From Klebsormidium nitens (Eukaryota; Plantae; Klebsormidiophyceae): a stretch of DNA of 64,000 nt. Below, piece after piece: positions 31,466-54,649 of this stretch. A program made the position numbers and the translations under genes. Under the pieces are notes generated by a model. It made no database searches. It was not told where the DNA came from and saw only the letters and a list, made by a program, of their open reading frames with translations. Positions within the stretch are counted from its first letter, which is position 1. Every line of letters begins with the position of its first letter. The DNA lies in NCBI GenBank assembly GCA_000708835.1, contig DF237022.1, positions 62,001-126,000 of the forward strand, given 5' to 3'.

Positions 31466-34400
31466 TTACATCTGGCGCGATTCGAGGAGCTTATTCACAT
31501 CGCCGCCTACCGCCGCAAACTCGGAGACGCACACGTCTCCTTGCGCCTTGATAAATTCATCCGACTCCCGACCCATCCCTTCCCGTGGCAACAAAGCGTA
31601 TAACCGGTCTCCAACTTCGGCGTCCCAATTGCTCCGGGGCTTTGCCAACTGGTCGCCGGGCATCATCCGAGCGTAGTTGTATGGCTCCAGAGAATTCAAA
31701 GAAGGGTCTAGGTCCATGTTCCACATAGACATCTGCGGACCAAGAGAAAGACAAAATTTGTTAGCCCGAATAAAGAGTATCTATACCCAGCGTCGTACTC
31801 TAGATTGTCTAATCAGAGATGGAGTGTCTTGCTTACAGATCTCTCTACGCTTGTTCGAAAAGGTCAGCATTGGAGCTTTCGAGGAAAGCCTCCGATTTGA
31901 CTTAAGGTCCTCCAGTTTGAGATGTGAGATCCAAGATAGCCTGTGACCGGAGAAACTCTTTTCTCGACCATCGGGAGAAGCGGAACCAGCTCATGAGAGG
32001 GGAACGAAATTCGAAGAACAAGGAAACGATATCAGAATCCTTGTGACTCGTTATTACAAAACAGGGGCTGTTAGCCTCCCTCCTCAACCTTTCAAACCAG
32101 GAGCTGTTTACCTCCTCCATAAAATCTTGATCAAGGCGATTACCAAGAGGAAGAACATGATAACAGAATGACAAATCTGTCTCGACGCACCAGAATGGCC
32201 CGCAGTTTCCGGTCGAAAGTCCAGCTCCAAAGCTCGCGCTCCGGGTTGTTGAACGGCCGCATCCAATTGAAGATCCCCTTCTTCTCTTCCTCGTCGGAGA
32301 GAGTACTCCATTTGGCCCGGTACACTGCCCCGACGTTTCCTCCGCTCATTTTGAGTCGTTTTGCATACCTGGTTTAGAGAACGTATCGTTGTAAAGAATC
32401 CGTGCACACTGGTCGAGAAACAGTCTCCTTAACACGAACGGACATACGTGTAATGAACAAAGTATCGCTGTTAGGAACACGTGCATATAGGAAGACGTGC
32501 ATACTTCTTTCAGAATAAGTCTCCTTGGAAAAAGTCTCCTTGTTACGAACAGAGTATCGTTGTCAGGAACACGTGCATACATGAGGCAAGGAAAACTGTC
32601 GTTGTAAGGACGACGAGCAGACGGAAACTGGAACGCTGAAACGCTCCGATGAACCGTCCTCAACTGCAGTTTTGTGGGGACCTGCTACTGAATGCCTTTT
32701 GACACGTTCTGAAAAGGGAACGGACGACGGACCCCTTGGTCGGCAAAACGCCGGGAGGCTTTTCTCCGCAAAAGTGGATGAGGAGAGGGAAGAAAGGACG
32801 GGAAAGGAGACAAAGGAGAGTGCATTTGGATCGCTCCAACGTTCCCAGCGTAACGGGGTAGATGCGGCAGTCTCTTATTGTCGTACGCCCCTTCAAACAG
32901 AGGACTAATCTACGAAAGACGGAAAGGGTAGAAGGATGGGTAACCTAAAACCAGTTGTCGCCTCGAAGTTTGCGTTACTCAAGTTGTAGCTTTTGGCAGT
33001 CGCTGTTCCAGAAAGCTCGACTTCAAGAGTACGGGTAGGGGAAGAAATGGGGGGTTGAGTGAGTCTGATACAACACCAGACCTTTTTTTGATCAGCTCAA
33101 GTGAGATATCTTCGCGTATCTGTATTCGAGCACTGCGTCACTTTACTGGACTAGAAAAAGGGTTCGTCGTCTGAAGAGCGAGTATCTTTCAATCTCAACA
33201 GTGCGGCGAAACCACTTTCGCGCCTCGTCAAACCCCACCAAAGTGATGAAGTACCCACAGAGAGTTGACCAAGCATACTCCCCAATAAAACATTGAAAAA
33301 TTAACGAGAATCTTAAGCACGCTGAAAGGAGACACTATCGGACCAACTTCGCAGTCCGACTGCCTCCAAAAGTTTCAAAAGGACAGCAGAACGCAAAGAA
33401 GAGACTGAAACGAAAAGGCTTTTCAAAGGCTCGCAACTCACAGCTCCGGGTTTGTCCGGAAAGCGCCCGACGTCTTCGGCGCGTCGTCGTCTTCCCAAAT
33501 CTCCGCGCCCCGCCCCCGGCCAATCACCTCGTCGTTTCCGTGCACGTGGTGAATCTCCTCAAAGATCCGGCCGTTGGGCATTTCGGCACCGATCTGCGCC
33601 ATGAGCTGTTTGTCGGGTTGCAAAACCTGCGCGCGCATCACGCGCTTGTGGTACTCCTTGTCTTCGACGGGATGCGGCCAGATGTTTTCGTCGAACACGC
33701 CGATCACGTCCAGCTGCAAAAAGAAAAAGAGATTAATAAGCACAAAAGCAGTGGTTTATCACAAGAGTAGTGAATATTTATAAAAGGAGTGAATCTGCCG
33801 AAAGACTTTCGATTGACGTTTGTAGTGCGATTGCAAAGGAAACGAGTATGCAATTGTGGTCCTCTTTGTCTTCGACGGGATGCGGCCAGATGTTCTCGTC
33901 GAACACGCCAATCACGTCCAACTGGGGCGAAGTAAGATTTTCGTGATCAGAGATTATCGAATTGCCGTCACGCTGACTTGAAACACACGAGATGCCGGTG
34001 AGACAAACTATGAGCGTTTGTGGTACTCTTTTTCCGTTACGGGATGGGGCCAGATGTTCTCGTCGAACAGACCGATCACGTCCAACTGCAAAAAGAAAAA
34101 GAGTTTTCATGATCACAAACACGGTAAAAGATTGCAGAAGCAGTGAATGATTGCAAAAGCAGTGAAATTGCTGTAGAATCTTCGAGAGACGTTGTGGCGC
34201 GATTGCAAAGGAAATCAGTATGCGCTTGTGGTAGTCTTTGTCTTCGACGGGTGAGGCCAGCTGTTGTTTTCAAACGCGCCGATGACGTCTAACTGCAGTG
34301 AAGTACGAGTGTCGTGATCGGGGACTTCAAAAGTGTCGTGTGATCAAAACTGGAAGGATTTGCCGCTAGCTTTTTTGGGCAAAACTTGGAGGTGCGATGC

Positions 34401-37400
34401 AGAAAGAAGTGTTTTGCGCTTTTGGTACTCCTTGTCATCGACGGGGTGCGGCCAAGTATTCTCGTCGAAAACGACCGATGATGTCCAGCTGCGAAAGACG
34501 TAGGTTTTGAACGTCTATGTCCAGCGACAGGTTTGAAAAGAGAGAGAACCAACAAGTTTTCAAGTGCAGGTGTTGCGGACCGAGTTTGACACTCTCGCAC
34601 TCGCTGCATTGCGGCCAGCAAGAACCATTTAATTACCGAATTGAAGTACATCAGAATGCTTTTGTTCTGTAATGTTAGACTTTTGGTTCTAAAACCAAAT
34701 TCCAAGTCAGAAACATTGATTCAAAGCCAGGTGATCATCCCCGAGTCGCACCGCCTCTCGAGTCAGCACCGGCGAGCGCGTTGCCAGTATAAATATATTA
34801 GAGCGTCTTCATCCCCCCGGACTTTCGACTTAAAGAGATGTGTTTTAACCATTAATCGCCAGGAGATGAAACAATTCAAGATGCGAAAGCAAAGAGAAGG
34901 CGAAGTGAACACACTCACCGCTTTGCGCGTCAGCACGAAGAAGCGCATCGCCGAGTAGAAGTAGATCAGAATGTCCTTGTTCTGCGGGTCCTCCACTTCG
35001 TCCGCCACTCTTCCGAGCGCCGCCGGCGCGAATGCCACGTCAGCACTCGCGAGGAAGAACCACGGGGCGTCGAGGTTCTTGGCGAAGATGGTGTTCCAGG
35101 ATCCGGAGACGCCCAGATTGCAACCGGGCTGCTCGACGTGCACGAAACGAGACCCGAGCCTGTAGAACGAATAACAATAACCCGTGTTAGTTGTGGATCG
35201 TAGTTGACTAAGAAAAGCCAGTGTTAATTAAGGATTGTAGATAACTGCGTCCAAAACTATGTACCATAAACTTGTGTTTTAGGATTTGGAGATGCCCGGG
35301 TTGCAGCCGGGCTGTTCGACGTGCACAGAACGCGACCCGAGCCTGTAGAAGAAGGGTCAAAAGGTAACCACCGTTGGTTAGGATCGTGGAATAGCTCCGT
35401 CCTAGATGATATGCCCTCTTCCGCTTCGACTTATCTAGGCATTTCACCGATGGAAACCAGTGTTTTAACCTTGACTTTTTGCCATGCTGAGATCGACCAA
35501 CGTGCATGGACCGGTAGCGCAGCTGTAAGTCCTCTACTTTTAGGATGTCAGGATTTAGTATCGGAGAATCCGGAGTGTCACCAAAGGAATCTTCTTGGAC
35601 CAGATTGCTTGTGGCCTGTCGAAAAAGGCACAAAGCCTCTGACCTGCGGCTGGAGTCTCGATAATGTTTTTTTTCTGAGCTTCAAGATGTAGACGGGCTC
35701 GAATCACCAAAAGTGACTGGGAGTTGCAAAAGGTTAAATTCAGAAAGCTTTTCAAAGTTAGACCGGGCTTGCAGCACTATGCTTGGCTGAAGCCTCCCGC
35801 GGTTGGAAAAAGAACTTACTCAGCATCTCGTACTTTTCAGTGTGCTTAACATTTGTAAGAGTCGACCACTTGGTGATAGTTTCATGGCACGCATTATTCC
35901 TCTCAGAGATTGCTGACTCCTTTCAAAGAATGTGAAGCACACCTACTGCTCGTAACCAGGGAGTTGCAGCTGCGAATTCAAGTGTAATCAGCAATAAAGC
36001 AGAATGATTGCGAAATTGCGTGCCTCGTAAGTATGTGTTGTTCCCTGCAATTAGGATGCCTTGTAAAGTGGCATTCGAATTCGAAGTGCATCTCGGGTAA
36101 GGCTTCCGTGCATTCGGCAGTGGTCACAACCTCAAAAGAGACAGAATTTTGAGAATAGGTAAATGAGAAATTCGTGAACCCTCACCTTGTCACGATATCG
36201 TTGACAGCCTCCTTCATCTTTCGGTTCTCCTCCGACGCGCTGGGCAACTCGTTCACAACCAGCTGAATCTTCTTCACTGGAACGTCGATGCTGTAAATCG
36301 TCCGCCGTAGCCACTCCGCGTTGTTCATCACCGGAATGCCGACCACTGGAATGGGCTTGCGCAAAAGGAACTGCACGGGCACAGATAAGCCTCAAAATTA
36401 CGCTGCTTATTGCCTCCGGAACGGGAAGCTCACTATACTTAATTGCTGATTGCCTCCGGAACGTGAAGCTCACCATACTTTGCTGAGATGCAGCTTTTCA
36501 TTTACGAAGAATAAAGCTGTGTGCTTTGGTCAGGGAGTCTGGAAATGCCTGGGAAGAAAGTGTTCTATGCACATTTGCCTCGGCAGCTGGCGAGATTCAA
36601 ATCACGAGTCACGTCAAGTCGACTGTCCAGCGCAATAACCATTATGCACACCTACGCACAAGCTCGTTGGAAACATTGGGCAACTACTCTGAGAACTTGT
36701 CATTCCTGCGATGGGCTTTCTTGATCGCAATCCGACAGAAGGGACATGTGTTGCGTCCAGCGGCAAAGTGGAAGCCAGCCACCTACCGGAAAATGGGGTG
36801 GTCAAAATTCCGTGTTAGATAGCACAAGGGAGCCCTAGAAACCATCTGAATAGTAGCGGATGCAAGTTTGGGCATGGAGCGTCTAGAGGGGTGGTTCATC
36901 AAGGCATCATGAAGCAATTATGTCGCCATATTGACGGCAAAATCTAAAGACGGGGGCTATCCAGCAGACGCAAGAAACGAACATTCTTGCATCAGCAGGC
37001 AACTGGAGTGGTCGCATCATTTATGGGTTTCGCAAGAGAGGGCAGGCGCGGCTCACGTACAGAAATCAACACAGCTTGAAACAGCACGGAAGGACATCGA
37101 AGCTCAAAGGAGCGTACCCCAAAGACTTGTAACAGAACTTGAAAAGGAACCTGTGAGGAGCTGAGAAAATGATTCCACATTCTGCCACCTAAGAGAAGCT
37201 AATAAAGTTATTCCTCATTTTGCTCAAGTCGGCTCAGTAACAAACCGCTTCATACAAAAAAGAAGCAAAGACAGCTGACCTGATTTCCCTTGAACTTTTG
37301 CCTGATCTTCTGGTAATTCTCTGGCGCAAACAGCGCCGGAATGATCGACTCGGCCAGCTCCTCCAAATGGGGCACCGAAGAGAGCTCCAGTAACCTGTCC

Positions 37401-37558
37401 CTAGATCCCGTCGTTCCGTTGGCCCACTCGACAATGGAAGAGCGTATGCGAACCGAGTTTGGGCGGGAGTTTGAGAAGCCCACACCATAAAGGCAGACAA
37501 AGATGATGCCGATCACTGTCGACAGGACTCCCGCGCTGGCGAAGCGCTTTTGCTTCAT
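31466..37558 (-). CDS. Type II membrane GT-A fold (GT2-like) glycosyltransferase, about 473 aa, 6 exons
   Basis: Exons 37558-37280, 36370-36186, 35159-34919, 33713-33442, 32368-32191, 31732-31466 join in frame (1422 nt). It has an N-terminal TM anchor and the motifs IPVVGIPV..IYSIDVPV..VVN, NLGVSGSWN..APWFFLASADVAF, GVFDENIWPHPVEDKEY and YRAKW..RPFN. Confidence 0.82.
33855..34500 (-). repeat. Four acceptor plus exon-start copies upstream of GT exon 4
   Basis: Exon-like starts at 33921, 34085, 34292 and 34488 (functional 33713), all preceded by CAG. They encode variants of LDVIGVFDENIWPHPVEDK. Confidence 0.92.
35296..35350 (-). repeat. Acceptor plus exon-start copy upstream of GT exon 3
   Basis: ccgggctg(t)tcgacgtgcac...acccgagcctgtagaa at about 35307-35350 versus 35125-35167. 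Confidence 0.85.
36404..36480. repeat. 40-bp intronic tandem duplication near the GT exon 2 acceptor
   Basis: attgcctccggaacg(g/t)gaagctcac(t/c)atactt occurs twice, period 40. Confidence 0.85.
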
Positions 37559-39259
37559 GGCTGCCAAGATTAATAACCCAGTCACTACCCCAGAACAAAA
37601 GCTCCCGCGTGCTATGAATTACGTCTTAGCAGAACGTCCCAGCGTTCTGCACGTGGCTCAAAAGTCGAGGCCGGTCTCCTGTATCTTGACGCTCAGCAGT
37701 TACCGAATCAAAGAGAATGCAGAGGCTGTTGTCTTGATGTGACTTGGCCTGAGAATGCCCCTCCTAGCTTTCTGTTAGCTACCACCTTGAAGCCCGGATG
37801 CGAACGCTTTCAAACAGCGAAGACTCTGCTTTCTGAGCTGCCGGAGTCCTCATCCAGATGAAGCATTGGCAATGGAGAGAACAAGAAGCAGGACTTGGCT
37901 TGCTCGAAGGGCGGCATGTCAAAATCTTCATATCACGCACAGCCTCGATCGCAATGCTAGTAGCAAAAGATTCAGAAGAGGGCCCAAATAGCGAAGGAGG
38001 CGGGTGTCAACTCGCAAAAGGCGCCACAAACTGCAATGCAGAGTGGAGCACTGAGCAGAGCAGAATCCGTTCGGCGCCGCATGCGAACATCCCGGAGGGG
38101 TCTGTTTTCTGGTCAACAATGCCGTATAAGGGGCTGGCCGTTAAAATCTTAAAATCAGTGCGGTATGTAGTATCGAAATGTAACGTCGTTTCGAACTCAC
38201 AAAAGAGGGGAAGAGGTGGCTTCGATGATAAAGATGGTGGTCCTCCAAATCTCAAAATGAGGTATTAAATGGTCGAATATATGGAAATAGCGCCCTTCCA
38301 ATCTGCAGGCCTCTCACCAGCGCCAACCCTAATTTGGTTATCAAAAATAATATTTAGCGAGCGGTACGGACGGAGGATCCGCGTTCCGGAAACCGCGGGT
38401 CGGGTCGTTCGTGTTACCGCACGGCAGTCAGCCGGACGGTAGCTTTGGCGACTTGTGCGGTATGAAAGCCTTGGCTGGTCGCCTTCGAAGGTCGCCAACA
38501 CCGCACCGGTTGTTTCGGTCGGTTAAAATAGCAGCGACTCCGACGACTCGATGACCGCACTAGCTCCGGACAGCACTAGCTTACTAGCTGGTCAAGTTTC
38601 AACTGACTGCAGTACCTACTCGTATGCATGATGTGACACTGCGAGTCACCTCAGATAGCGGCTACTGTGGGTGACTTCTTGGTATGATAGGTACACTATT
38701 CTGAATAGTTGGGACCATGATTTCCCCCCTTCGCGCTTCCTTGTGGTTGTCACTTCATGCGCTTTAACTGACTCTAAGGCTCAGCCAGCACTAAGATCGA
38801 TGCTCAGAGTTAGCTAGAGTAGTGCCATCCCAGCTGAAAATTGCAATGTGAGGATCCGTCTAGCTGTTTACCAGCTGACCAGCTTGACATGTGCTAGTAA
38901 GTACGTCCTGAAGAAGTTTTCCTGGACGTCAGTATGCCTCACGTTTTCCTCGTGTCCAAAGGAACACATCAAACAGCTTGCAGACTGAAAGGCGGTCTGC
39001 GTTGATTTGGCGGCATCTTACGTACCTTCCTCTTCTCTAGAGACGGGTTCCTAGTCAGAGATTGGCAACAAGAAAGCAGGGTCTACCACATCTTGCCTCA
39101 GCATTGCAGCCAATCACGCCCCCCAGCCCCCCTACGCGGCCCATGAGCTTCGAAGTTTCACAGCCCCTTGAGACAGACCATACGTGCTCGCACACCAGGA
39201 AACCCGTTTCAGCTGATCCGTTCCGCAGGGGCAGCACTTCGATTGTGTACAGCTAAGCC

Positions 39260-40612
39260 ATGGGGGCAGTACTAGAGGGAAGTCCGGCGAACCTGGCGAA
39301 AACAATCCTGCTGCTCATTGGCTGTTTGTGCGCTGTTGCGGGGCTCTCGCAGCTGCGGCCCGAGGGGCGGGACTTGACGGGTTCATTCCTCCTGCGAGTG
39401 ACCGGCTCGGCGTCTTTCTTGGGGTGCCGAAACCAGACGGTGTTCGTGACGTTCAGCAACGAGTCGGCGAGCGCGGCTCCAGTTGGGGGGGATGCAGAAT
39501 CGGTTGCGACGCGGGCACAGCTGAGAGAGGGTGTGGCGCCCCTTTCTATTGTGGAGGGTGAGCTGGAGGAGTGTGAGGTGCCCTGCGATATCCTGCAGCT
39601 GGGGAACCTGACGTCGCTGTCAGAGGTTGAGAAGGTTAATTGCAATATCCAGTATTTCAACATGACGCAAATGCTGACGTTGCTGGCGGCGCATAAGGGC
39701 CAGGCCTGGGTTCAGTACAGCGGAGACTCTCTCATCCGCAATCAGTTTATGACGATCGCCGAGGAGATCCTAGGCTTGGAAGCCAATACGATCCCCCACA
39801 CACACGGGATCTGTTGCACTCTGGATGGGCTTGCTAGGAACAGCAGTGACCGCTGCACGACTTGGATTGGCACTGACATCAACCCCCAGGATCCGTCGAC
39901 GTATACCTGGGAGCGGGCGCGCAGGGCGCTCCGCGATAAGACGGCGGATTTCTGCTTCACTTTGTTGGATAATATAATAGTGACTGACGCAATCGGCGCC
40001 GTGCCATTGCTGTTTAAACCAGGGGAGATACACCCGTTGGTTGTGGTTTACGACATGGGTTTGCATTCGATGTTCCACGGGTTTAGCCAGCTGGGTTATC
40101 GGCACCACCTGGAGACTCTTACGGAGAAGCTGAGGGCTGTTAGGCAGCAGCAGCTTGAAGCGGGTAAGGCTCGGAAGTGGGCAAACGAAACTGGGGTGCA
40201 GACAGTGTCGAGCGAGGGGATGATGTTTACGCGCTTTATCTATCATATGCCAACGGCATATACCGAAGACATTTTTAAGTTCGTTGATCCTCTGAGGCGC
40301 AACGAGCGGACGGAGCTCTTTGTGAAGATCCTGGAGCAACATGTGGCGAAGAACGAGGATCTGTATAGCGTCGTCGATACGAACCGGTTGACGAAGTTTA
40401 TTGACAAGAGGCACACTTGGGCGCAGCTTAAAGTGATGGACGGAATCCATCCGTTTTGGCCTTATTACCACATAGTTACCCTGTTGGATTTTAACTATAT
40501 TAGCGGCTTATTTTCCTTTTGCACTAACAGAGACGATCTAGAGTACGTAGAAGGCAAGGAGATGTACGCGGGAGAAGCCAAAATGCGGAAAGTTCATGGC
40601 TGGGGCGCTTGA
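39260..40612 (+). CDS. SGNH/PC-esterase-type (TBL-like) putative glycan O-acyltransferase/esterase 1, 450 aa, no CDS introns
   Basis: Single ORF with an N-terminal hydrophobic anchor, a GDS motif (QYSGDSLIR) and a DxxH motif (MDGIHP). Clear paralogue of 50651-52870. Confidence 0.8.
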   Translation: MGAVLEGSPANLAKTILLLIGCLCAVAGLSQLRPEGRDLTGSFLLRVTGSASFLGCRNQTVFVTFSNESASAAPVGGDAESVATRAQLREGVAPLSIVEGELEECEVPCDILQLGNLTSLSEVEKVNCNIQYFNMTQMLTLLAAHKGQAWVQYSGDSLIRNQFMTIAEEILGLEANTIPHTHGICCTLDGLARNSSDRCTTWIGTDINPQDPSTYTWERARRALRDKTADFCFTLLDNIIVTDAIGAVPLLFKPGEIHPLVVVYDMGLHSMFHGFSQLGYRHHLETLTEKLRAVRQQQLEAGKARKWANETGVQTVSSEGMMFTRFIYHMPTAYTEDIFKFVDPLRRNERTELFVKILEQHVAKNEDLYSVVDTNRLTKFIDKRHTWAQLKVMDGIHPFWPYYHIVTLLDFNYISGLFSFCTNRDDLEYVEGKEMYAGEAKMRKVHGWGA

Positions 40613-40769
40613 GTATTAACGTAGGTAAATTCGCTTCGGGGCGTACTATATTAAACAGCTATCTGAAAAGTATAGATTACTGTAAACAGCTATCATTTGA
40701 TTGAAAGAATTTCAATTCTGACTGAGTATAGAATAAATTTATACTGCTCAAGACTGTTTGATTAGAGAT

Positions 40770-41450
40770 TCGTCGATTATCTGTACTTATACTTATGTGG
40801 ACGGTGCGGCCCGGAAGTGCATACCGGTCTTGTATTTTTACGGAAGCCTTGGACGATCTTGCACCACGAGCTCGCGTATGCTTTGCATGATTGCGTTGTT
40901 AAGCAACAGTAAAACTCTGCGACTTCCTTCCATTTTCTTTGCTGTGATAGAAAAAGACGATCCACCTCTGCATGACCGGTACGCACATGTGCCGTAGATC
41001 GACTGGCAGGCCCTCGGGCGGCGGCGCGCATGTGTTGCATACATGGATTTTCATACTTACTTCGTTCTCGAGCATTCAAGCAGATGCGGCCACGTTAAGT
41101 TTCTGCACCGTCTCGTTCCCGAAACCCTCAAATAAAAGAAGGTTGAGATGAGGGTTCGAGATGAGAGCGCTTGCGAGTAAGGCATGTGTGAGTATCGTAT
41201 ATGAGCACCATTCGCGCACAGCGCAAGGGCGTGACGGTCAAGCATCCACAGCTCCATGCTTAAGCTACTCAAGCCTGGCACGTTCTGCGTACGGTGCTCA
41301 CATGAAATGCAACAGGCCCCGGCGAGATCACAGGCACTGAAAGCATGGTTAATCTTAATTGCCCTAAGGTGCAAACAGAAAATCCAATGAATGTATACCA
41401 CTAGCAATCGATCAGTGTAATCTATTTTGCAACCATCGATTGAAGCAATC
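40770..41450. other. Palindrome-dense intergenic patch at the convergent SGNH1/FUT junction
   Basis: Dense GCATG, ACATGT, GTAC, GCGCGC and GAGCTC words. Judged by eye. Confidence 0.5.
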
Positions 41451-42083
41451 AAATCGGCCCGAAATGAGTCCGCTCGCCAGCCACTAAGACCCTAGTGGTG
41501 GCCCAAGCTTCTGGCGAGCTTGAGTCTGGTCGCCTCGTAGCTAGCTCGAATTCTAAGCGTTTTTTACAGCTCAAACAGCCTGAAGCAAGTCAATTTTAAA
41601 TCCACTGTCATATATAACAGAAAGTCATGATATGCAACGTCCAGAAGCGGCCGGAATTTTAGAACAGATTATGTAGCTATAGCCATGGCAATGGACGTGT
41701 TTTAAGCTTGGATCTCGGGTAAATGATCGACAATTGATCTGGCAGAGCCCCGTTCAGCACCATTGTTGAAACGCTTCCACGATCGCGGCACTTTTCCAAT
41801 CGGCCGCGCCTCATACCATCAGTGCATGCAAATGTGCTGTGGATCCTTCATACAAAGGAAGTCTGAGCTAGAAGCAGAAATGGACATATTTTCTACCAAC
41901 ATCCGCTGCCGAACATAGAACTTAGCTAGTTATTCTGTTGGTGAATCCGAAAGGGCGGCGCCGCAGTACTCTTAGCGTCCGCAAGGACGACAGTCAATAC
42001 TTTAAATTACAAGAGTTAGGCGCCCTCTTTACAACGACCGAAGGACTGCTGAAGTATGCGTGTTACTTTTAATCAGAGGCTTC

Positions 42084-45000
42084 TCACGACGCTTCCGGAA
42101 ATCTCGGCCTGGTGTCCACAAGCGTGACCCCCCCCACGAAATCCGAGCAGCGCTCCAGCTCCGGACTCGCCATGTGAATCGGCCCCCCCACGTGGGGCAT
42201 CTTTGGACACACCAAATACTGCGGGGCGGAGTGCCAGCACGGGTCGCTGTTTTTGGCGCGCTCGCACGAGTAGTAGTTGGGGTAATACGGGTTCTTCCCG
42301 GCGATGCTTGACGAAACGTAACCGAACGTCGACGTTTGCGTCAGGATCTGGTGGTCCGTAAAGCTGAGCAGCCAAACGTCGAGCACGGCCGAGTCGTAAT
42401 GAGAGAGGTCGCTCCACCGCTCCTCCTGTTCGTGCGTCGCGCTCAGCACCTGTGTGAAACGGGTTGCGTTAAATACCCTGAAACTTACAACCCCTACACC
42501 CCCTAAAATCTTTCGGTTCGCGGGAACAGGTGTGCTCGGAACGGGAGGTGAGTTTCTGCGTCAAGCGCCGGGACTCTACTCGGAATCACACCGCTCTCGA
42601 GATTACTTGAAAAGGCTCAAGCTATGCTAGGATAATCTGCCTGGCCGGACGAACGGGGTTAGTAAGGGGGTAAAGGGTGGCAGGGGTGCAGAGCAGATGA
42701 GGCTCAAAACTCAGACTTATCATTTTGCCACGGTCTTACTCAAACTCGAGCATATGACGAATTTTGCAGACCTGAGAAGAAAGATCCGATCCCGACCAAG
42801 AGCTCTGCCTTGAGCATCAGCTCTCCCCCGCGACTTTCAAAAACGACCTGTGAAAAGAAGAATTGACAGATGGGCGTTTGTCTCCCCCTCCTCCGCTGGA
42901 TGGTTGACAGACGGGCGTTTATCTCTCCCTCCTCTGCTTCGTCTCCTTACGAGTTTTCAAAACAAAATGCGGTATTTTAGAAGGGAAAGGCTGAACTCGA
43001 AAAGAAAAGGTCGCTGAAAAGACGATCGTTCTCAAAAACAATCGTTCCCAAGAACGATTGAGACACGAGCGCTTTTCTCCCTGCTCTGCTTTAGTCGTAA
43101 TGGGGTCTGGATACATGGTGAAGTGCCTCATCAAAGAAGAGACGGATTGTGAAAAGGAAAGATCGGAGAAAGGACAACCATTCGCACCTCCACTCTCCGT
43201 CCCTCCACCGTCTTATTCTTGCTGAAGACCTCCTTCAGATACTCCTCGTACTTTGGAATCATGCTCGCGACAAAGATGACGTCGAACGCATCCTTGTCTG
43301 ACTCCTTAGCAACCTGCGCCCCCTCTTGCGTCGGCAACGTGTCAAGCAGCCGCGGGATGAGGTCATGCTCGGCCATACACGTCAGCGCGTTGTCACTGGT
43401 CCGCTGGTTATAGTCCTCTAACGCGTTGCCCTTTTGTCGAATTTGGAGCCCGACAGACTTTGTGGCGCCGGCCATGTATTTGTCGTAGAACGAAGTGACA
43501 CGTGTCCAGATGCGGTCTTGCGGCAGGAACAGGTAGCGCGCCACGCGGTGGAATGCCTGCGCAAGCGAGGTGAAAACAACGTAAGCGAATTGGATATGAC
43601 GTCAGCTACATATGTGTCGCAAAACGACGCGGCACGTGTCCGGATGCGGTTTTGCGGCAGGTAAGGGTGAACGCGCCACACGGTGGAAGGCCTGCATAAG
43701 CTATTTGAAGCGACATCAGCCGTGTAGATGTTTCGAAGAAGGATTACTTGGTGCGGTCTTGTTGGGAAGAGACTTTAGCATCCCACTGGGTGGAACCGGC
43801 GCTGACGTCAGTGTCGGAGATTGACGGCAACCGTTTTCCCGCGAGTGACGTGACCCGTGTCCGATCTCTGCGGCATAGAGGTGTCCCGCCAGGCGGTGCA
43901 GCGCTTGAATAAAGAGTGACGTCAACAAGGCGAAAGGTGAGGTCAGCAAATTATAAAGCGCCAGCGCCGGGTGCACATTCCAGAGAGGGATAGACCATGT
44001 GCGACCAGAAGAGTCGTCAGCGAATCTGATGGAAAAACGTCACACGATGGGCTTGGCTCGAACAGGATTTTTATATCTTCAATTGAGAATATTGACGTGC
44101 CGCCGATTGGACACGTGGCAATGGGATTGTATGGTCCGCTGGGCCTCAATTTTGCTGAGTCTTCCACAGACAAGGCGGGAAGGACAGTAGGAAATAACCT
44201 CTGATTACTGCTGGCGTCATCACGGCCAACGCAACCTCAACTTCTGTAACGCCTTCGGAAAATTACGACTTCAGCGATGACAACAACACGAAAAGATGAT
44301 TGTAATCAAAATGAATCAAGCTATCGATTTTGTCTCGCAAAAGGGTAGTGACTACAGTAGCTGCAATCGACCATTTTCTGAGTGCCCACATATGACGGAT
44401 GTAACAGAACGGGCTTTTAGAAGTGTGAGCTCACCTGATTATCGGGGAAGATCTCTCTAAGCAGTAGCCGCTTTGTGGGATGCACGTAAAGGCCCGGAAG
44501 CCTGCACAATGTGCCCAACATTACCATATCAGAAGAGGTTCTTCATTCAGCTTTCCAATTGGACTTTCTTTCGCTGTTTAACCAATCTCGACCCAAACCT
44601 CGTGAACCAGCTCGTTTCAAGCAGTCCGCTAACCGAGTCCATAACCACAAACGTTTCCTCGCCCGATCAGTAAACAACTCCCTAGGCAAGCTTGACCGTC
44701 CTTTAACCACTCCTTTGAGAAATCGTTTGGATCCTAAGTAGGACTTAACCAGACGTCGCGTCTGTCATAGCATATGCCTGATTTAAAGAGCGTTGCTCCT
44801 GAGATTCCAACGTTAAGGAACGGTGAAGGCCGTTTCGTCGAGGAATGAGGAAGCCTTGTTATGAGTGCTCCCCCTCAAACCAAAATCTTCTCTTGTGCTG
44901 CTGATCAATCAGAGCGTTCTAGAAGTCGTTCGATCCTGAGGAGCTTGACAGACACCACGTCTCTCACGAGAGAGAAAGTCGTTCTGAGAGACGGGTTGAC

Positions 45001-48000
45001 TTCAAAGATTTTCCGGTGGTCAGAAAACATCTATCCTGAACCCTGCAATCGACCCTGGAAAGTCCAGACTGCTACACAAAGACGTGAGCTGGAGTAACTA
45101 GACTGAGCGCTCACCAGTAGTTGTTCCACGTGTCGTGCGGGAAGATGAACCACGTCCGCGTCTCCAGTTCGTTCATCTCCTCTTCGCACGCGGTCAAGCC
45201 AAGGACGTCCTTCATAGGCCACTGCACCGGAAACATGTACCGCTTGGATACTATGCAGGGTTAAGTGGACACAACACTTGACCGTAAAGAAGCGCTATAG
45301 CTGCTCTTGAGTTTACTTGTCGGCAGACACTTCGATGGTCCTTAGAGGAGTGATAACCTAGGTATTCCTAGCTTTCAGGAACCGCAATCTGGAACTAAAG
45401 GAGAGTGGAGCGCAGTAGACTGTCTGATATGATACTTATTTTGTGGATCTTGGTAAGCCTCGCTCACTGCCTCAGAAGCCAACAAATCTACCAGAAGTGG
45501 CCGAACAAGAATGATGCTGGACAGAGTCTACTCTCTTTCGGGACTCGCACTCTACGAGGTGCAAATCGAACTGGCTGATTTCAGAGGCCGCTACTTGGAA
45601 TTGCCAACTCTTGCGCCACTGAACTGACGGTCTTGGGGTGTATTGGCCCCCGCTAAGCAAGTGACATCTAGGTCTGGCGAAGACTTTCGACGGCACTGAA
45701 AGTTGTTGATTGGAACGAGCTTCCATTGCACGTCGAACAACCCAAATATCGAAGCTGACCGGGAAACAACGAAGCAAGCCAGACGAGGCGAAACGGGCAG
45801 AATACCGAACCGACAGGATTCCAGGAGTTGCAGAGAAAGCCAGGATATGAGAAGAGACACAAAAAAACAGGACAGGTTTAAGCAGCAAACGAAGCGGAAG
45901 GGACAACATGGTCTTACGGGCAGGTTGTCGAACATCTTGAGAACTGGGAACTCTGCCGGAAGTAGCCAGCTTGACCCGGGGAACGGCTCACAAAACAATT
46001 GCCCAAGGGCTGCCTTGACACCAGCGTCGACCAAGAGCCTGAACGGAAGAAAGGGACAAAGGACTGGTGTCAAGGATGTTCATGGGCCAGCCGAGAGCCA
46101 CCACGTTCGTCCTCTTTGAAAGTCTGATCTTATGAATCTTGATAAGCTTGACGAGCAATGCAATCAACTGAATGTCCAAAAATTCTTCGATCGGTGTCTC
46201 GCAGTCATTCAAACGTTTTCAAACCGGCAGGTATCAGCACTGGCAAAGCTCCGTCAAAGGAGTCACCAAAGCTTCACAACCCCAACGATTTCAGCCTGGA
46301 AGTTTTTTCACCCTCAGCCAGATTGCAAGAACAAATGTTTATGAGACTCGAACTATTTTCAAAGCGGCTGAGGGATTTTGTGCGGTCACAAGTTTGTTGT
46401 ACGGTCATTTGTGACCTCCTCGAAATGAGAGTGCCATGCGTGCGACTTCTTGAGAAAGCTCGGAGTGACTTCGACTTTCAGAAGTATCTGTGTAAACAGT
46501 GGAGAGCACGGAGAAACGCTGACAGGGGATTGGTGCAGCTTCCAAATGACAAAAATGAAGCATGACGTGTAATCACAGCTACAGTTTGACATCAGTGCCC
46601 CTTGGGAAAGTGTGAGAGAGCATAGTGGTACCGTCCCACAGCAACGCCCTTTTCGATGCCCAGTCACGAAGGCCCAAAGCGATCAAAGTGAAGATCTCAA
46701 CTCCAACTGCTATTATTGGAATAGGTCGACCAATAAGAAAATGAATGATGAAGGACAACGGGCTGAGATTGATGAGGAAAAATGGGGTTTGGAAAAGGGA
46801 CAAAGAAGAGCGACACTCACACTCGCTGAGTCAGCACTGCGTACACAAACGTCGACGCCAGGTTCAGCATCTTGTTCCCCAGGCCCGCATGTCCGGACCA
46901 GACCATAAATCTGCATCCGTCAGGGGCCCCCTCCCCCCGCCACGCTTCCGTGATGTTTTTCATGTTGGAAACACAACCGCGGTGATACGCCGCATACGCG
47001 TCAAAGACCTGCCCGGCGACCTCGTTTGCATCGTCCGCTTCTCTGGGGGGGTACTTTGCTCTCTCGCCGCGGGCCTTGCACGCCCCCCCGGAATGAGCGT
47101 ATGGACCGAGGGAATGTGTTTTTGCCTTGAGCTGTGCTAGAAAGTCTAGGATCAGGGGGCTGGGAGGCGCGACGAGGGTGGGCGTTTCAAGGCCTGCAGA
47201 GTGAAAGGGGGTTTGGTTCTTTCGCCTGCGTCAAATGACTGACTGTTTGAGTTCTTTCAATGACTTGGCATCAATTTGCTGGCGCAGAGGAAAACTGGCT
47301 TAGATTCGTGGTTGACTGGCACTGTTAAAGGTTCCAAGTGTAGGTCTTCTTGTAGTGGACAAAGCAGCGCGCATGCGATTGCGATTCTTTAAAGGACGAG
47401 AGGTATTGATCACGCTTTGCCTTTCAGATTTCGGGCAAGTTTCAATCGTCAAAACCAATTGTTGCATAACCTGGAGCCCCATGCTGATCAGAGACTCCCT
47501 TCTGCCACGTGTAAATTCCGCAGCGTAACGAGACGCACTTCCAAATCAAAAATTGGTCCTTGTCTTCCGCTTCTTCTGCAGATCTAGGTTGATGATCAAT
47601 CAACAAGAGTAAGGGCGGATCGAAGTAGGAAACAGTAGAGTAGCAAAATGTGGCCGCCCACTCAAAGGACCAAGAAAGTGGTGATGAGTGGTTTCATTCG
47701 CCTCCTACGGAAGAGCTACCGCCGCAGTTTGCTTGGCAGTTCCTGTGCAACAAACCACCACGCTTCGCTGCTGAATATCTTCAGAATGAGCACCAGCTGA
47801 GGCCTCTTCATCGTGTGTTTGTGTTTTGGTCATCAAGACACTTCAAAAAGGACAGACTTCCGATCTCATGAAACCTGACAAGAATGACATCGCTTCACCA
47901 AGCAACGAAAAAGCTGGGACTTCCGAACTTAGTAATCGTCTATCCTTGGTTTTCCAACCTCATCGTCGCACCTTTGATTAGGAGTCAAGCTTCTCAAGGA

Positions 48001-48359
48001 GTGAAACTCATTGCAAAGCAGCGGGAAAGCTAGAAATTCTGGACCACCGATCCGGTGTCTTTAGCTTTTTAATTCATAAACAACTATGAACAACTTGTGG
48101 ACCTTTACAAGCTAGTAATAATCAACTCCATACCAAGACAACGAGATTTAAGAACGCAGTCCTTACCTAGTCCTCCGATCGCTTTCATCAGCGGCGGGAT
48201 TGCCGTTCCCCCGGACATAGAAACAACTAGAGCCGACAGCAGAGAAGCCAACAGCACCACACAGGCTACGGGCCCCCTATGTCTGGAAGCATAGCTGTGC
48301 ACGAGCGCCATTGACTTCAGTGTGTTAGTACTAGTATCTGCAAAAGGGTCGTTCTTCAT
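42084..48359 (-). CDS. FUT: GT37 (xyloglucan/AGP alpha-1,2-fucosyltransferase-like) protein, about 520 aa, about 8 exons
   Basis: Exons 48311 (or 48359)-48167, 47136-46821, 46038-45918, 45618-45556 (tentative, weak donor), 45221-45115, 44501-44435, 43556-43188, 42449-42084. Motifs: N-terminal TM, CRFMVWSGHAGLGNKMLNLASTFVYAVLTQRVLLVD, LFCEPFPGSSWLLP, AFHRVARYLFLP, VGLQIR, WLLSFTD..STFGYV, DPCWH. Confidence 0.88.
43595..43910 (-). repeat. Two acceptor plus exon-start copies upstream of FUT exon 43556
   Basis: Copy 1 starts at 43691 after CAG (gccttccaccg..ctgccgcaaaaccgcatccggacacgtg). Copy 2 at about 43845-43905 has lost the AG. Confidence 0.8.
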
Positions 48360-50650
48360 CTATGCTGAACCCGACGTGCCAGTTTAAGATGAATGTTAAG
48401 AAACCAGGAGGGTGAAGGGGCCCAGACGGCTGTATGCAAGAACGTGGCCCGATGTTTCTTCTCTTTGGCGCAATAACTGCAGCCTGTCGACTCCCCTGGA
48501 CGAGCTCCGATCAGCACAGAGTCATCCGAGCACACTGGGATCAGAGCCTTGACAGATTGGCACCGAATCAGCTGGAAGAGGACTGAGCGATGAGATTGTT
48601 GCGTAACTATTCAACAAGCTGGCTTATTTTGAGGGCTGATATTCTTGGCTCCCTTCCCACTTCAAGCTGCTCCCATGCACTGACGCTGATTTGAACACAC
48701 TGAGAATCGTCTCTTCCAATCAGACAAGACTACTGAACGTTTCTGATATCACTACAGAGCTCCAGAATGTGTCACTGGAGAACTCTGGACGAAGCAAATG
48801 TGGCACTGATGAGGAGTCTACGTGTGATTCTCGTGGGCTGGATCAGGAAGCGGCCACCAAGTTTGGAAGGAGGCGGCAATGTTATTTGCCAGCTTGCAAG
48901 CAGAAAGAAAGCAATGCAGAAGCTCCAAGAGTCCAGTCCCTTTTGCACGAGACCCACAGCTAGACATATCCTGATTCCTAGACTCATGCAGAGACTGTTT
49001 TCTTTGGAGTGCTGCATGAGCCTGAGCAGTCTGCACTTTTCGTGGCTCGTTTCCGGATCTTCTCCCCCCGACATTTCCGGAACTTGCGCCCTGTTCGTTA
49101 CCTAGTACCGGTTCGGCCGGGATTTGACTAGGTCAACGACAGGTTCACACTACAGCTTTTCCCAACCAACCTGCCAGTTTCAGTGTCAACTAATCTTGAC
49201 TAACTTCACTCTGCAACGGACTACCTAATAGGTACACTAAGAGTTTCACTACAACTGGCAAGGTGCTCGGGAGAATCTGCACCGGGTAAAAATAGTACCT
49301 TCCTGCAGTCGGACGATACGGCTACTGACGCCGGAATAAGAACCGGGCACTTATACCGGGCATTTTTGGAAGCCGGCGTTGACCAGAACCGCCCAAGTGC
49401 AGAATCTTCGGACTAGTGCCGGAGTCAGAGGGACTCACGCAGAAACCGGTTGTCTGTTCGACCGTCCGATGAGATGGTGGGTACATCGGACGGTCCCCTT
49501 GACACGTGGATCACATGTTCTGACAGAATCCTAGATTGTAGTTCAGCCGGCCCTGCGTCTTTGGGATGTGACCACTGGTTTCCAGATGTCGCAAAGGGGA
49601 AGCGGCAAATCAGGGAACGAAGGAGGGAACGACAGCTCGTTTCGTTCGAGTCTTTAAATTGAATCTTGTTATGAATTCTGAGGTGCTACCGTGTGGCAAC
49701 TTGGGGTGCCACTCACTTCATTCATGAATACAACTGCTTCGTCTCCAGTCACATTAGTTTTAAGATGAGGATAAGTAATGTTGTTTCGAAGGCGACTGAG
49801 TTTACTGTGGCGGCTGATGGCACCTTCCGCACAATGCTAGGAAGTATGCCCAGCCCTTCGTTTGTGAGGATCTTAAAAGTGGACTTTACGAGATAGTCCG
49901 CAGTGTGACAACTGGGCTCGGGCGTTTGGACAAAGAACAAACTTGGCCACAAAAGGCTGCCTTTACTTAGCGGAAGGTTATCGGGTCTGAACGGAGCAGG
50001 CACTCCAGGCAAAATGAGTAAGTGGGTTTTCCTTCATACTGATTGCGGTGGAACAAGTTGGGTATGTTAGCTGAGAGAAGGTAGTTCTGGTGGATCGATA
50101 TGCTTTCTTGATACGGAATAGGGGTGTCTGTGCATCAAAATCATATGCTCTGTGCCTTTATTTTGTGCTCATATGGATGCGAAAGAGTGCTGGAAAAAGC
50201 CCCTTCGAGGCGCTAGGAAAAGTACGAACATTCTTGTTGGGTTTTGTTCGTGTTCTCTTCTTTCATAAGCTAGCCAGTTCTGAGTCATTCAGTGGACAAC
50301 TTTTTCTGAGTAAGCCTTGCCAGCTTGTCTTCAAGCCTACAGAAGTTGAAAAGGATGCTTGTGTTTGAGCACATGAGCTCGGAGGTCAAGTGATTGAAGA
50401 ACGTTGGACAAATAGGTCTTCAAATTCCTCTTCGATTTGACTGATCAATTGGGAGCACCTAAAGCAGTGCCCAGTTGTTCTCAAAACTCTGCCGATGTGA
50501 AAGCAGAACACCACTCTGGGCTTGGGGGACGTGTGGTTGCATAGCCCTGTCTTGTCAGTGGTAGGAATTAAGCTGGAGTCAAGGTCTTCTCTAACCAGGG
50601 TCTGATGTTTTTTCCTCCCTGCAGAGCCTGGAGCCAGCGCCAAGCCCAGG

Positions 50651-52870
50651 ATGTCGACACTGATGTGTTGTTCCGCGGCAGCGGCAGGTATGGCAGAAAC
50701 TTGTTGTCTTTGATTGAAGTATACATCCTACCTTATTCTCTGGCACCAGACTTTATTTAGCGCCCCCCCCTTGTATGGCAGGAACATATCTTACTCTGAC
50801 TCGATTAAACGTCCTCTCTCCTTTCCTGTCAAGACTTCACTGCATCAGCCAATTCACGGCAGGCAGCAGACTGTCAGCACAAGCTTTCATCGTCTGAGCA
50901 ATTTGCGCTTGATCATATTACCCATCTTCTATTTCATAAGGATTTTCTGAACCACCCCCCCTTGGCCAACTCATGGGAGGCACCAGACTGTCAGCAAGAT
51001 TTGAGCAACGCACAATCAACTCTAAGAAATGTTGGAGCTCGTCCTTGTTGAAGTGTGTGTATTTCCTCTCTTCTGCCGTGCCGCAAGCGCGCAGTCACAA
51101 GTTTTCCAGCTTATCCAACTCAGTGCGTTAAGTGGGACAGGGTTCAGTCCTTTTCTGAAGGGAAGACCTGAACAATGTGGGAGAGTTCGGCTGAATAAAA
51201 AACCATTCAAAACAAATCATTACTAGCTCAACTGCGAACGACGTGCAGATTTGTTGGGACCCATTAGGGACACTCGATCTATCATTGCTCTCTTGGTGAC
51301 AACAAACCCTTATGCCCATCTGATCACTTTGCACCTTCTGGAACAGTCTCGTGGCTTGCTCAGGCATTCCGGAATCCTCGTCTTTGAAAGGCTCTCTTTA
51401 AGCGTTCCACCTCCAAAGCAAAGATTGTCTGTCCACCCAAAAAAAACGGTTTGCAAGTACTGGGGTATCGGAGTTCCTGTGCTCAAGTATTATGATAGGG
51501 TCGGAGTTTCTTGCTTACCCTCCCTCCATGATGATGCACTAGATTACTCTCAGCACCAAACTTAGAAATGATTGCATCCTTGTACCTCACCCCATGATTG
51601 ACACTACTGTCTCTGTTTCTGCCCAGTTCTGCTGCTGTTCCTGGTCTGGGTGTCAAGCGACCAGCTCCTACATCTACGGAATCGGCCTCTCCTCCCTCGC
51701 GTCGACTGCAAACCGGAGCCACCAGTCTCGCTTAATCAAAACCAGGTTAGCCTACCCACTCATGACCAGGACACCCAAACCCAGGTTAACCAGAACCGGG
51801 TTACGGAGAACCTGCCCGCGCCGGTGGCCGACTCTTGCCCCGTTCCCTGTGACGTCCTCCAGTTGGCAAACCTGACGACGCTCGCTGACGTCAGCAAAGT
51901 CAACTGCAACGTCGAGTATTTGACGCCGTGGGACGTGGGGCGCTTTCTGGGCGCTCGGAAGAACCAGGCGTGGCTGCATTTCACGGGAGACTCGATGATA
52001 CGCCGGCAATGGCAGAGCATTGCGGCGGATCTGGGGGTCGAGATCGATACGGAGCCTTTGTGGGCTGTCTGTTGCAAAGACGGGAAGGAGTGTAAAACGT
52101 GGGAGTACAAGGATATCAACTGGGAGGCGAAACGGGTCGCGGGGCTCGTGACGGGCGCACTGCGCGACGAGGGGTTCGAGTTCTGCGTGACGTATACCCC
52201 GGTGCAGTTTATCAGTCAGGTCGTGGAGAATTTCGACACGCTGTTCCAAGCGGATATGGTGCAACCGTTTGCAGTCGTAATGAATATGGGCTTGCACCAC
52301 ATATACCACGGGCAGGGGCAGCTGGCATACCGGGCCGATTTGGAGGCGCTCACCGCGCGGTTGCGGAAAGTGCGGGAAGTGCAGAGGGGGTCGGACGGGG
52401 TCACGAAGACGATGTTTATTTACCATACGTTGACCGCTTATAGCGAGGAGTTGTTTGGGTTTATCGACCCGCTTCGCCGAAACGAACGGACGGAGCTTTT
52501 TGTTCGTCAGCAGGAGGAGCACTTCCGGGCGACCGGGGGATCCCTCTACCGAGTGCTCGACTCACACCGGCTGACCAAGTATTTGGATAAGCGCCATTTC
52601 TGGCACCAATTAACGTTCGGGGACGGCATTCACCCCGGGTTGCCTTACTACCAGATTGCTTCGTTATTGGACTACAACTTCGTCGTCAAAGGGGTCATAA
52701 GCTTCTGCACAAACGCGGACGATTTGGAGTATAAGCCGCTAGCCCTGCATGCCAACAGTGGTCGGATGTTAGATAAGGAGGCGGAAGGGGACGAAGTGGA
52801 AAACCTCAAAGCGATGCGGCGTGTTCACGGATGGGGGTCGTTCAGCCCTTTCGAACACATTGACAGGTGA
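50651..52870 (+). CDS. SGNH/PC-esterase-type putative glycan O-acyltransferase/esterase 2, about 426 aa, 2 coding exons
   Basis: Exons 50651-50687 and 51627-52870 join in frame and give the anchor MSTLMCCSAAAAVLLLFLVWV. Motifs HFTGDSMIR and GDGIHP. Shares blocks such as DPLRRNERTELFV and a terminal VHGWG with SGNH1. Confidence 0.8.
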
Positions 52871-53257
52871 GGACTGTTGTTCTTCGCTTTCTTTTGTTTT
52901 TAGGGCCAGATCAACTTCGCGCAGTCAGTTTCGAGGTTCTTCGTGTCTGGGATCAACGGTCAATCAAGCTTTCTGAAATCCGAGAAAGCGGACACAGTGC
53001 GCGTGGGGCTCAAGCCGGCAAGCGCGCTTCGAACGGTCTCGTTCTTCTAGGCCACTCCTTTCACTAGTTCTTCCCTTTTTTTGTCGAACTTTACACGATC
53101 ATTTTCAGTCTCGATTTTGTGACGCGGGTCGACAGTCGCTTATCCAAAATTTCCGTAAGTTGAGAAAGCGAAGACATCGCGCGAGGGGCTTGGGCGGGCA
53201 AACGCTTCGCACGATTGAAGACTGTTTTTCCAGCTTAACTCTCCCTCTTATTGTTCT

Positions 53258-53632
53258 TTATGTTGCATACGATCCGGATCGTTCCGTCTTTGTCCGACGC
53301 CCGACAAGCGCGTTCTGTTCTTCTTCTTGAACGGGTTTGAACTCCGCCAGTGGACAATTGACAACGTTTGTCAACTGTTTCAAGTGCTTCTTACGAGTTT
53401 CCCTTCGCTGGTCTGACAAGAGCCTCTTTCTCCAGTGCGCTGGACCCCAGGCTAAATATGGCAAGTGGGCGGTTAACTCTTTTACCAGTCGTTTGATTCT
53501 GGGAATGTTTTCAAAGAGCCGTAGTGTATGTTCTTGTACCAGAGATTTGTGGATCTTAAAGAGGGCGTAAGTGGGCGCGTACGTGGTTCTGACGACGTTC
53601 AAGAATCCGATCCAGCTTCTTAGTCGCCGCAA
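53258..53632 (-). other. Unassigned 124-codon ORF in intergenic DNA; possible transposon or gene relic
   Basis: The translation looks protein-like, but I recognise no family and found no flanking exons. Confidence 0.25.
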
Positions 53633-53767
53633 AATCCAGAAAACCTGGCTCTGTGCGGCAACCGTCAGAGTCCGATTGGGGTAAAGAAGTCGCCGATACG
53701 AACGCTTCCGCCTACGGCACTTTTAAGAAGGATCCATTGATGGGTCATTGCCTACCCACGTCTCATC

Positions 53768-53862
53768 ATAAGTTGGTCAAGAAACTTAAGTTGGTTGTTT
53801 GTTTAGAGAAACTTAAGATTGGTCAAGAAACTTAAGTTGGTTAAGTTTCCAAACTTAAGTTG
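53768..53862. repeat. Cluster of the palindrome AACTTAAGTT
   Basis: Perfect copies at 53783, 53829 and 53852, a one-mismatch copy at 53810, and partial sites at about 53768 and 53841. Confidence 0.85.
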
Positions 53863-54649
53863 ATTGGTTGTTTCTCTATCCGGAGCCATCACACGAGTCC
53901 ACAATTTTGCTTTATCCGTTTTGCAAGGCTGCTTGGCCTTCAGTGACAGCGCCGATATGCACTTCGCAATTTTGTTTCATGTCGGTAAACAAAGCGTCAG
54001 GCCGTTCGTCGAACTCAGCACAAGTAAATTTCCCCTGAATGATCCTATCTCATCATGTGATGCAGGGAGTAAAAACGTGCCAGGCGAAAATCGCCGGATT
54101 TCGTGTTGTTGCCAACGGGGTCAGCTGTCGACCATGCTGAACTCCAGACCGAGACGACGCCGTTGTCTTGTGGTGCGAAGCGGTTCGGCAGCGTCTAAAC
54201 CCTCATTATATGCCAAAGTACTTACTACCTTATGATCTTCCAGTACTAGTACATATTTCTTACAGCTTTGGTCATGTGTCAGGAAGACGGTTTTGGCGAG
54301 CGGCCAGTGTTCTTAGCCTGACGGATCTATTATTAAGTGTTGAGAATTTTGTTCTGATATTCTAAAAGACTGTGCATGTGAAGTTGCCGCCAAATAGGAA
54401 ACAGTATTCTTTGAGGGATCGACAGATAGGGACAATACAGTTGCTAGACTTTATAGAAATGTCATTGTAAGGGGTGACTTAATTGCAAAAGTGTCCGGTA
54501 TTTATGTAAAAGACACAAGAACACAACGTATATTTGTGTTGTATTTTTCTGCGGATTGCTTCAAAGTCCTCTATCCTAGTTCTATCTGGTACTCGAGCTT
54601 TCAAGTTTATTGCGCGTGACAACGAAAACAAAGTTCGAAGAGCTTGCGG

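Follow-up and report, generated by a model that had tools for sequence, protein, structure and literature searches.

Does a run of four neighbouring genes in the streptophyte alga Klebsormidium nitens NIES-2285, each encoding a signal-anchored, putatively Golgi-type glycan-modifying enzyme, represent a biosynthetic cluster or an ordinary gene neighbourhood? The genes lie in a 64,000-nt window of scaffold DF237022.1 (DF237022.1:62001-126000; window position = record position − 62000, window positions being used throughout), and we refer to them here as gene A (a GT2-like glycosyltransferase), gene B (KFL_000730130), gene C (a GT37 fucosyltransferase), and gene D (KFL_000730150), the second and fourth of which encode PC-esterase-like paralogues. 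The initial annotation of this window read them as two head-to-head modules, A/B (pair 1) and C/D (pair 2), each co-expressed from a shared promoter and together building one acylated, fucosylated glycan. We found no support for this proposal, as other paralogues are unpartnered, relatives are unlinked, the transcripts of pair 1 are unequal, the two intergenic regions are dissimilar, and strand alternation is general in the region. Genes A–D are instead probably four separate, intact genes that are adjacent by chance and do not form a co-regulated cluster, and their products appear not to be functionally coupled. Literature searches using the locus tags of this locus found no paper.

The annotated gene order of DF237022.1 places genes A–D consecutively and on alternating strands: gene A at 31466-37558 (minus strand; 473 a.a., no Pfam hit on record), gene B at 39260-40612 (plus strand), gene C at 42084-48218 (minus strand; annotated as a 484-a.a. 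XG_FTase, and reaching 48311 with an upstream in-frame ATG), and gene D at 50014-54198 (plus strand; annotated 473 a.a., with a natural stop at 52870). The outer limits first drawn around the four genes, 31466 and 52870, are both true stop codons, and the distances between start codons were likewise reproduced, at 1.70 kb ATG-to-ATG for pair 1 (37558 to 39260) and 2.34 kb for pair 2 (48311 to 50652), or 1.80 kb if the annotated ATGs of pair 2 are used. The N-terminal anchoring that had been described was also seen in all four proteins, each N-terminus containing a 19-residue hydrophobic segment (Kyte-Doolittle mean 2.1-2.45) within residues 10-33. The locus therefore presents, in the plant sense of a biosynthetic gene cluster, contiguous genes of at least three enzyme classes.

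Elsewhere in the K. nitens genome, the members of the two families that we examined have no such partner. One PC-esterase-like paralogue, KFL_000950240, is head-to-head with a cofilin gene and convergent with a CHASE histidine kinase gene, a second, KFL_000950220, lies between the cofilin gene and a photolyase gene, and the gene A paralogue, KFL_002810080, lies between genes for an M24 peptidase and a SPARK kinase. Glycan-related genes occupy none of the six neighbour slots of these three paralogues. Nor did we find the linkage in relatives: no GT37 or GT2-like exon occurred within 10 kb of the relatives in metagenomic contigs L004, L008, and L009 (19, 32, and 121 kb). In a related alga (run SRR23617307), the gene B orthologue carries 1.33 kb of upstream sequence (contig L002) and the gene A orthologue ~1.38 kb (contig L010), so that an overlap of ~1 kb would be expected at the K. 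nitens spacing; the two contigs share nothing. These non-overlapping contigs lean against a conserved tight pairing, albeit not decisively. The lack of partners within the genome and of linkage in the relatives examined both argue against a true biosynthetic cluster, in which each divergent pair would share a bidirectional promoter and all four products would serve one acylated, fucosylated wall or mucilage glycan. We regard such a cluster as unlikely, even though four signal-anchored glycan enzymes from three families standing in a row is what it would predict.

The history of the locus points the same way for the most part. In the family tree, gene D groups with the copies on scaffold DF237044 (support 87/87) and gene B pairs with its orthologue, for which reason B and D appear, from sequence, to be old paralogues representing the two deepest branches of the family rather than a recent local copy. 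Two simpler origins fall away: a recent tandem duplication of B and D is ruled out by the tree, and the copying of a glycosyltransferase plus esterase module as a unit is ruled out by the partner glycosyltransferases being unrelated. Because B and D form the two deepest branches, their linkage may be read as an ancient local duplication kept in place, with a later copy having moved to another scaffold. The continued linkage of these two deepest paralogues is at the same time a point that a true cluster would account for.

Head-to-head pairs appear to be the local norm, because the strands alternate (+ − + − + − +) across seven consecutive genes, unrelated ones included. The run begins with a DUF7906 gene (plus strand, ending at 29536) and continues beyond gene D with a spermine synthase gene (minus strand) and a Pinin-domain protein gene (plus strand), and the members of this unrelated pair are separated by only 0.5 kb, less than in either of the supposed modules. 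The head-to-head position of B and D against two unrelated glycosyltransferases would then most likely be an ordinary neighbourhood in a compact genome with alternating strands, which weighs further against shared promoters as a special feature of this locus. No acetyl-donor machinery of the RWA/AXY9 type was found among the annotated genes of the locus, another feature that fits poorly with a dedicated acylation cluster, and the other large open reading frames (ORFs) of the window gave no informative family in Pfam.

At least seven public K. nitens RNA-seq studies contain parts of this stretch. Transcript contigs from four studies were mapped to pair 1, and such contigs can neither fix true transcription starts nor show co-variation. 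Gene A was fully assembled and spliced in all four studies, while gene B was represented by 172-329-nt pieces in two of the four, and pair 1 is thus not visibly co-abundant. The very unequal assemblies speak against a cluster transcribed as paired units. In its favour, the contig-free gap of pair 1, delimited by the transcript contig ends (38089..39083), spans at most ~1.0 kb, which is within bidirectional-promoter range, and a shared promoter region in this gap is therefore possible for pair 1. A comparison of the two intergenic regions revealed no extended similarity, with short k-mers only in common, and no motif block common to the two promoter regions.

Several observations weigh against the chance adjacency that we favour. 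Four consecutive secretory glycan enzymes from three unrelated families are nominally unlikely under random gene order; if 2-3% of genes were of this kind (a rough figure, not computed), finding two glycosyltransferases in the two non-paralogous slots would have a probability of ~1e-3, before any correction for the many windows examined. The B–D linkage is apparently older than the divergence of the family's other copies. Transcript contigs are blind to co-variation, and co-regulation at different absolute levels would be compatible with them. Finally, the synteny comparisons were based on short contigs and distant relatives, with no second Klebsormidiophyceae genome. The same enrichment argument could be met by a looser arrangement, in which the four products work in a common compartment and one pair or more (most plausibly the GT37 enzyme with an adjacent PC-esterase-like protein) modifies a single glycan, each gene having its own promoter and the proximity being maintained by weak selection or shared chromatin. 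We consider this doubtful. Unequal transcript abundance would be compatible with it, and gene C, located between two old paralogues, has been flanked by both for as long as the present order has existed; against it, the linkage is absent elsewhere, and direct evidence ties no pair to one substrate. It seems improbable, finally, that A–D constitute a Klebsormidium-specific locus for one fucosylated, O-acylated surface glycan in which an unrecognised PC-esterase subfamily was recruited twice beside different glycosyltransferases. The reading of four separate genes brought together by chance is retained in what follows, and the identity of each gene is considered in turn.

Gene C (42084..48311, minus strand; annotated 484 a.a. 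from ATG 48218) is firmly identified as a GT37 fucosyltransferase, as the initial annotation had it. Genes A and C were searched exon by exon, and four exon pieces of gene C matched the Pfam XG_FTase model (PF03254) at 58.3, 35.6, 32.2, and 30.5 bits (cut-off 23.4), with PF03254 also called on the annotated product. The pieces (46820-47230, 45594-46079, 43131-43544, and 42084-42449) are co-linear and cover profile positions 96-170 and 269-472; Pfam showed no XG_FTase match for candidate middle exons in the interval 43.7-45.3 kb, leaving profile positions 170-269 unplaced. The annotated start at 48218 omits the upstream in-frame ATG at 48311, and with it the stretch (48219-48311) that supplies the sole signal anchor of the protein. 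Translated from ATG 48311, the protein opens with MALVHSYASRHRGP, and a 19-residue segment comes next (Kyte-Doolittle mean 2.45), as in a type II membrane protein. Within an intron of gene C (43600-43774, minus strand), we noted a translated echo, VHPYLPQNRIRTRAASFCDTYVADV, just upstream of the exon starting ARYLFLPQDRIWTRVTSFYDKYMAG; this echo is too diverged to be picked up by a DNA repeat finder.

By family, the product of gene C should use GDP-fucose as the donor and add L-fucose to a galactose or arabinose residue in a wall or surface glycan. With Arabidopsis FUT4 and FUT6 as the precedent for an arabinogalactan-type acceptor, such a glycan, or another one, is more likely to be the acceptor in Klebsormidium than xyloglucan, given the absence of xyloglucan signal in this genus and the placement of charophyte GT37s in a separate clade. 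Klebsormidium showed no LM15/LM25 xyloglucan epitope signal and no isoprimeverose, and the charophyte GT37s form a clade apart from the FUT1 type, with a proposed role in fucosylating the arabinose-bearing D side chain of xyloglucan (PMC8211770). The undetectable xyloglucan also counts against a cluster devoted to one fucosylated and acylated polymer, for which it can be said that land plants do place GT37 fucosylation and PC-esterase-type O-acetylation on one polymer (PMC11360243, PMC8211770).

Gene A (31466..38088, minus strand) encodes a GT2-like type II membrane protein, as indicated by the gene call, spliced transcript contigs, and an anchor at residues 10-28. Its coding sequence runs from ATG 37558 to the stop at 31466, and transcribed sequence extends to at least 38060-38088. 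The mRNA is 2.1 kb, with spliced contigs measuring 1.8-2.1 kb in three of the studies and 0.97 kb in the fourth, and contigs from all four studies define the first two introns at 36371-37279 and 35159-36184, both GT..AG. The coding part of exon 1 (37280..37558; joint 36370/37280 in 4 runs) translates to 93 a.a. including the signal anchor, and exon 2 (36185..36370, both joints in RNA contigs) to 62 a.a. containing the first GT-A strand, 'IPVVGIPVMNN...SIDVPV', which aligns with residues 128-188 of a Logan-assembly homologue (P0015) and 75-135 of the K. nitens paralogue KFL_002810080. Exon 3 (34913..35158, acceptor joint at 35158, 3' end undefined) encodes the putative nucleotide-sugar/metal region, 'CNLGVSGSWN...PWFFLASADVAF', with a single Asp where the paralogues show DD. 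The start of exon 4 (33618..33734), 'IGVFDENIWPHPVEDKEYHKRV', carries the GT2 'FDE...ED' block, placed by tblastn to P0015 and P0025 and by invariant columns of the family alignment, and a later exon (32197..32367) encodes the conserved C-terminal region 'KW...PFNNP...SWTFD' (tblastn to P0015 332-386 and P0025 281-337). All of these exons lie on the minus strand.

Searched alone against 1.84 billion protein representatives, exon 3 of gene A returned 30 matches at E<=1e-3 (E 3.6e-9 to 1e-3), and seven of the 15 homologues tested passed or approached the Pfam model Glycos_transf_2 (PF00535; best E 4.6e-8). Gene A is co-linear over four exons (2, 3, 4, and the later one) with P0015 and KFL_002810080, both full-length, and candidate GT-A motifs are present as IPVVGIPV..N, NLG..SWN, and FDE...ED. 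The DD of its relatives is AD in both gene A and its orthologue, P0007, leaving the invariant Asp alone; gene A otherwise keeps the invariant residues of the family. The GT2-like label first given to gene A thus stands through its homologues, which are Pfam GT2 proteins, but not through gene A itself, whose exon matches PF00535 at only E 0.14 and whose annotated product has no Pfam hit. Searching solved structures with the gene A family profile yielded only a marginal match to chondroitin synthase (E 0.037). It is reasonable, on these alignments, to regard gene A as a divergent GT-A/GT2-like glycosyltransferase, the label being transitive.

The family of gene A has an unusual distribution, comprising a second K. 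nitens copy, a related alga, and dinoflagellates (P0026, P0020, and P0032, from Polarella glacialis and Prorocentrum cordatum). We also noted decaying tandem copies of exon starts and acceptor sites within the introns upstream of these exons (minus strand, window positions 33642-34508 and 35091-35350). The start of exon 4 is copied at 33850, 34014, 34192, and 34416 (66-87% identity), and the acceptor region of exon 3 is copied at 35274-35350 (84%).

The products of genes B and D are paralogous, as initially recognised (42% identity over 391 residues, E 6e-96). A word-indexed search of 5.8 billion proteins found, at that sensitivity, six members of their family, namely B, D, KFL_000950240 and KFL_000950220 (both on scaffold DF237044), a Logan-assembly protein (69% identical to B), and a JGI metagenome cluster, and a metagenome scan with the family profile gave no locus. 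The conserved features are GDS(L/M)xRxQ, (N/D)MGLH, DPxRRNER, DGIHP, and cysteines towards the two ends of the domain. PC-esterases have been defined by GDS and DxxH motifs, an H or W replacing the Asn of SGNH block III, the lack of GxND, and terminal cysteines (PMC2824669). In the present family, GDS(L/M)(I/L)RxQ occurs in all five members whose annotation spans the region, the C-terminal DGIHP is invariant in six of six sequences, and MGLH, likewise invariant, comes after a hydrophobic strand where block III would be expected from the alignment.

The SGNH identity originally assigned to B and D is accordingly supported indirectly, by this motif set and by the nearest predicted structures, but not by Pfam: the PC-esterase model (PF13839), with its cut-off of 27 bits, gave a weak match to one of the six members, gene D (15.6 bits, E 0.015), and no TBL or DUF231 domain was matched above threshold among the family sequences. 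In the ESM Atlas, PC-Esterase clusters made up 17 of the top 20 named language-model feature neighbours. The Atlas model of gene D (P0003; predicted template modelling score, pTM, 0.63) had structure neighbours that, where named, were all Cas1_AcylT/NXPE4_C, Pmr5/Cas1p, PC-Esterase, or Lipase_GDSL clusters (template modelling scores of 0.36-0.46 by query and 0.39-0.64 by target); three further listed neighbours were clusters without a common Pfam family.

A lineage-specific family of some other fold and function, with coincidental GDS and DxxH motifs, would explain the subthreshold Pfam score of a single member, as well as the lack of anything relevant when two family profiles were searched against solved structures. 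It would also accommodate the poor AlphaFold models of a PC-esterase-like protein, with a predicted local distance difference test (pLDDT) of 43.5 from a 3-row alignment and 48.1 from a 6-row alignment, the first of which returned only noise in Foldseek (e.g., RecA/RAD51), with no match at E<=0.001. We nonetheless judge this explanation very unlikely, as the family keeps three motifs unchanged and in the expected order, as these agree with the PC-esterase pattern described in the literature down to a candidate block-III H and the terminal cysteines, and as the feature neighbours, like the named structure neighbours, are consistently PC-esterase/SGNH. These indirect lines of evidence from motifs and models suggest that B and D are PC-esterase-like, and we have not filed them as TBLs because they fall below the Pfam PC-esterase cut-off. 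They likely represent a PC-esterase-like family that is small and very divergent and is marked by GDS, (N/D)MGLH, and DGIH motifs. As such, they would form an acyl-enzyme by way of a Ser-His-Asp triad, and the glycan on which they act in the Golgi lumen would be either O-acylated or de-acylated.

The gene models of this family required some revision. Gene B is one uninterrupted 450-a.a. ORF (39260..40612, plus strand), as indicated by the ORF itself, the family alignment, and an RNA contig, with its motif residues at 155-157 (GDS), 266-269 (MGLH), and 394-397 (DGIH). It is identical to KFL_000730130 except for a 48-residue deletion in the latter, where an annotated intron (~40379-40522) would remove 48 in-frame residues including DGIHP. 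Given that the ORF is open through this stretch, that the stretch is invariant in the family, and that an RNA contig (40429-40630) passes the annotated acceptor unspliced, the annotated intron is probably wrong. Gene D (50014..52870, plus strand; supported by sequence and splice signals, the P0003 alignment, and the gene call) comprises small 5' exons (~50625-50688, with ATG 50652 encoding residue Met-11 in the annotated product) and a main exon that starts at ~51628 and ends with the stop codon at 52870. Its annotation splices past this stop to 54198 (52868-54198), adding ~40 C-terminal residues that are absent from other family members; the shorter end at 52870 is more likely. KFL_000950220 (DF237044.1; L003:1-498) is annotated as 311 a.a. 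without the GDS-bearing N-terminal half, and genomic sequence homologous to that half is present upstream, which points to a probable truncation of the model and not to a broken gene.

If the four genes did form a cluster, they would be the first case of wall-glycan genes physically grouped in a streptophyte alga, would place the clustering of wall-glycan pathways before land plants, and would supply a handful of enzymes for an algal wall polymer that is still unknown. The analysis has three smaller products in any case. The first is a divergent PC-esterase-like family that has four K. nitens members and a clear catalytic motif set; two of these four genes are probably mis-annotated, one of them in a way that removes the catalytic DxxH. 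The second is a corrected start that gives a charophyte GT37 its anchor, and the third is a GT2-like type II family common to Klebsormidium and dinoflagellates. Each is a candidate for finding out what is fucosylated and acylated in Klebsormidium, where xyloglucan is not detectable.

Among known systems, Arabidopsis FUT1 (GT37) and AXY4/TBL27 offer a likeness: a GT37 enzyme is combined with a Golgi protein of the GDS/DxxH kind, each has a type II anchor, and the two act on the side chains of one polymer. The genes for FUT1 and AXY4/TBL27 are not physically clustered, and AXY4/TBL27 is a TBL O-acetyltransferase whereas B and D fall below the Pfam PC-esterase cut-off. This, together with the lack of xyloglucan epitopes and isoprimeverose in Klebsormidium (PMC8211770), leaves the xyloglucan analogy that had been drawn a weak one. 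Plant and algal biosynthetic gene clusters, in which contiguous, non-homologous pathway genes are co-expressed, resemble genes A–D in contiguity and in having at least three enzyme classes, but the tests that could be run speak rather against co-expression, a shared pathway, and conservation at this locus.

The PC-esterase family itself (Pmr5/Cas1p; Anantharaman and Aravind 2010, PMC2824669) shares with B and D the GDS and DxxH motifs, a candidate block-III H, a secretory N-terminus, and terminal cysteines. B and D differ in being too divergent for the Pfam model, in fitting none of the five described subfamilies in the tests run, and in their restriction to Klebsormidium and a few environmental relatives, as far as the sensitivity of our search allows (six sequences in 5.8 billion). 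The nearest comparison within the organism is with KnPOAT1/2, the two canonical TBLs of K. nitens, which act as O-acetyltransferases on homogalacturonan and are described in a review that omits gene names (PMC11360243). Compared by description only, KnPOAT1/2 are bona fide TBLs with shown activity, whereas B and D are annotated as 'hypothetical proteins'; the two sets nevertheless share the same organism, the same superfamily, and a predicted Ser-His-Asp chemistry.

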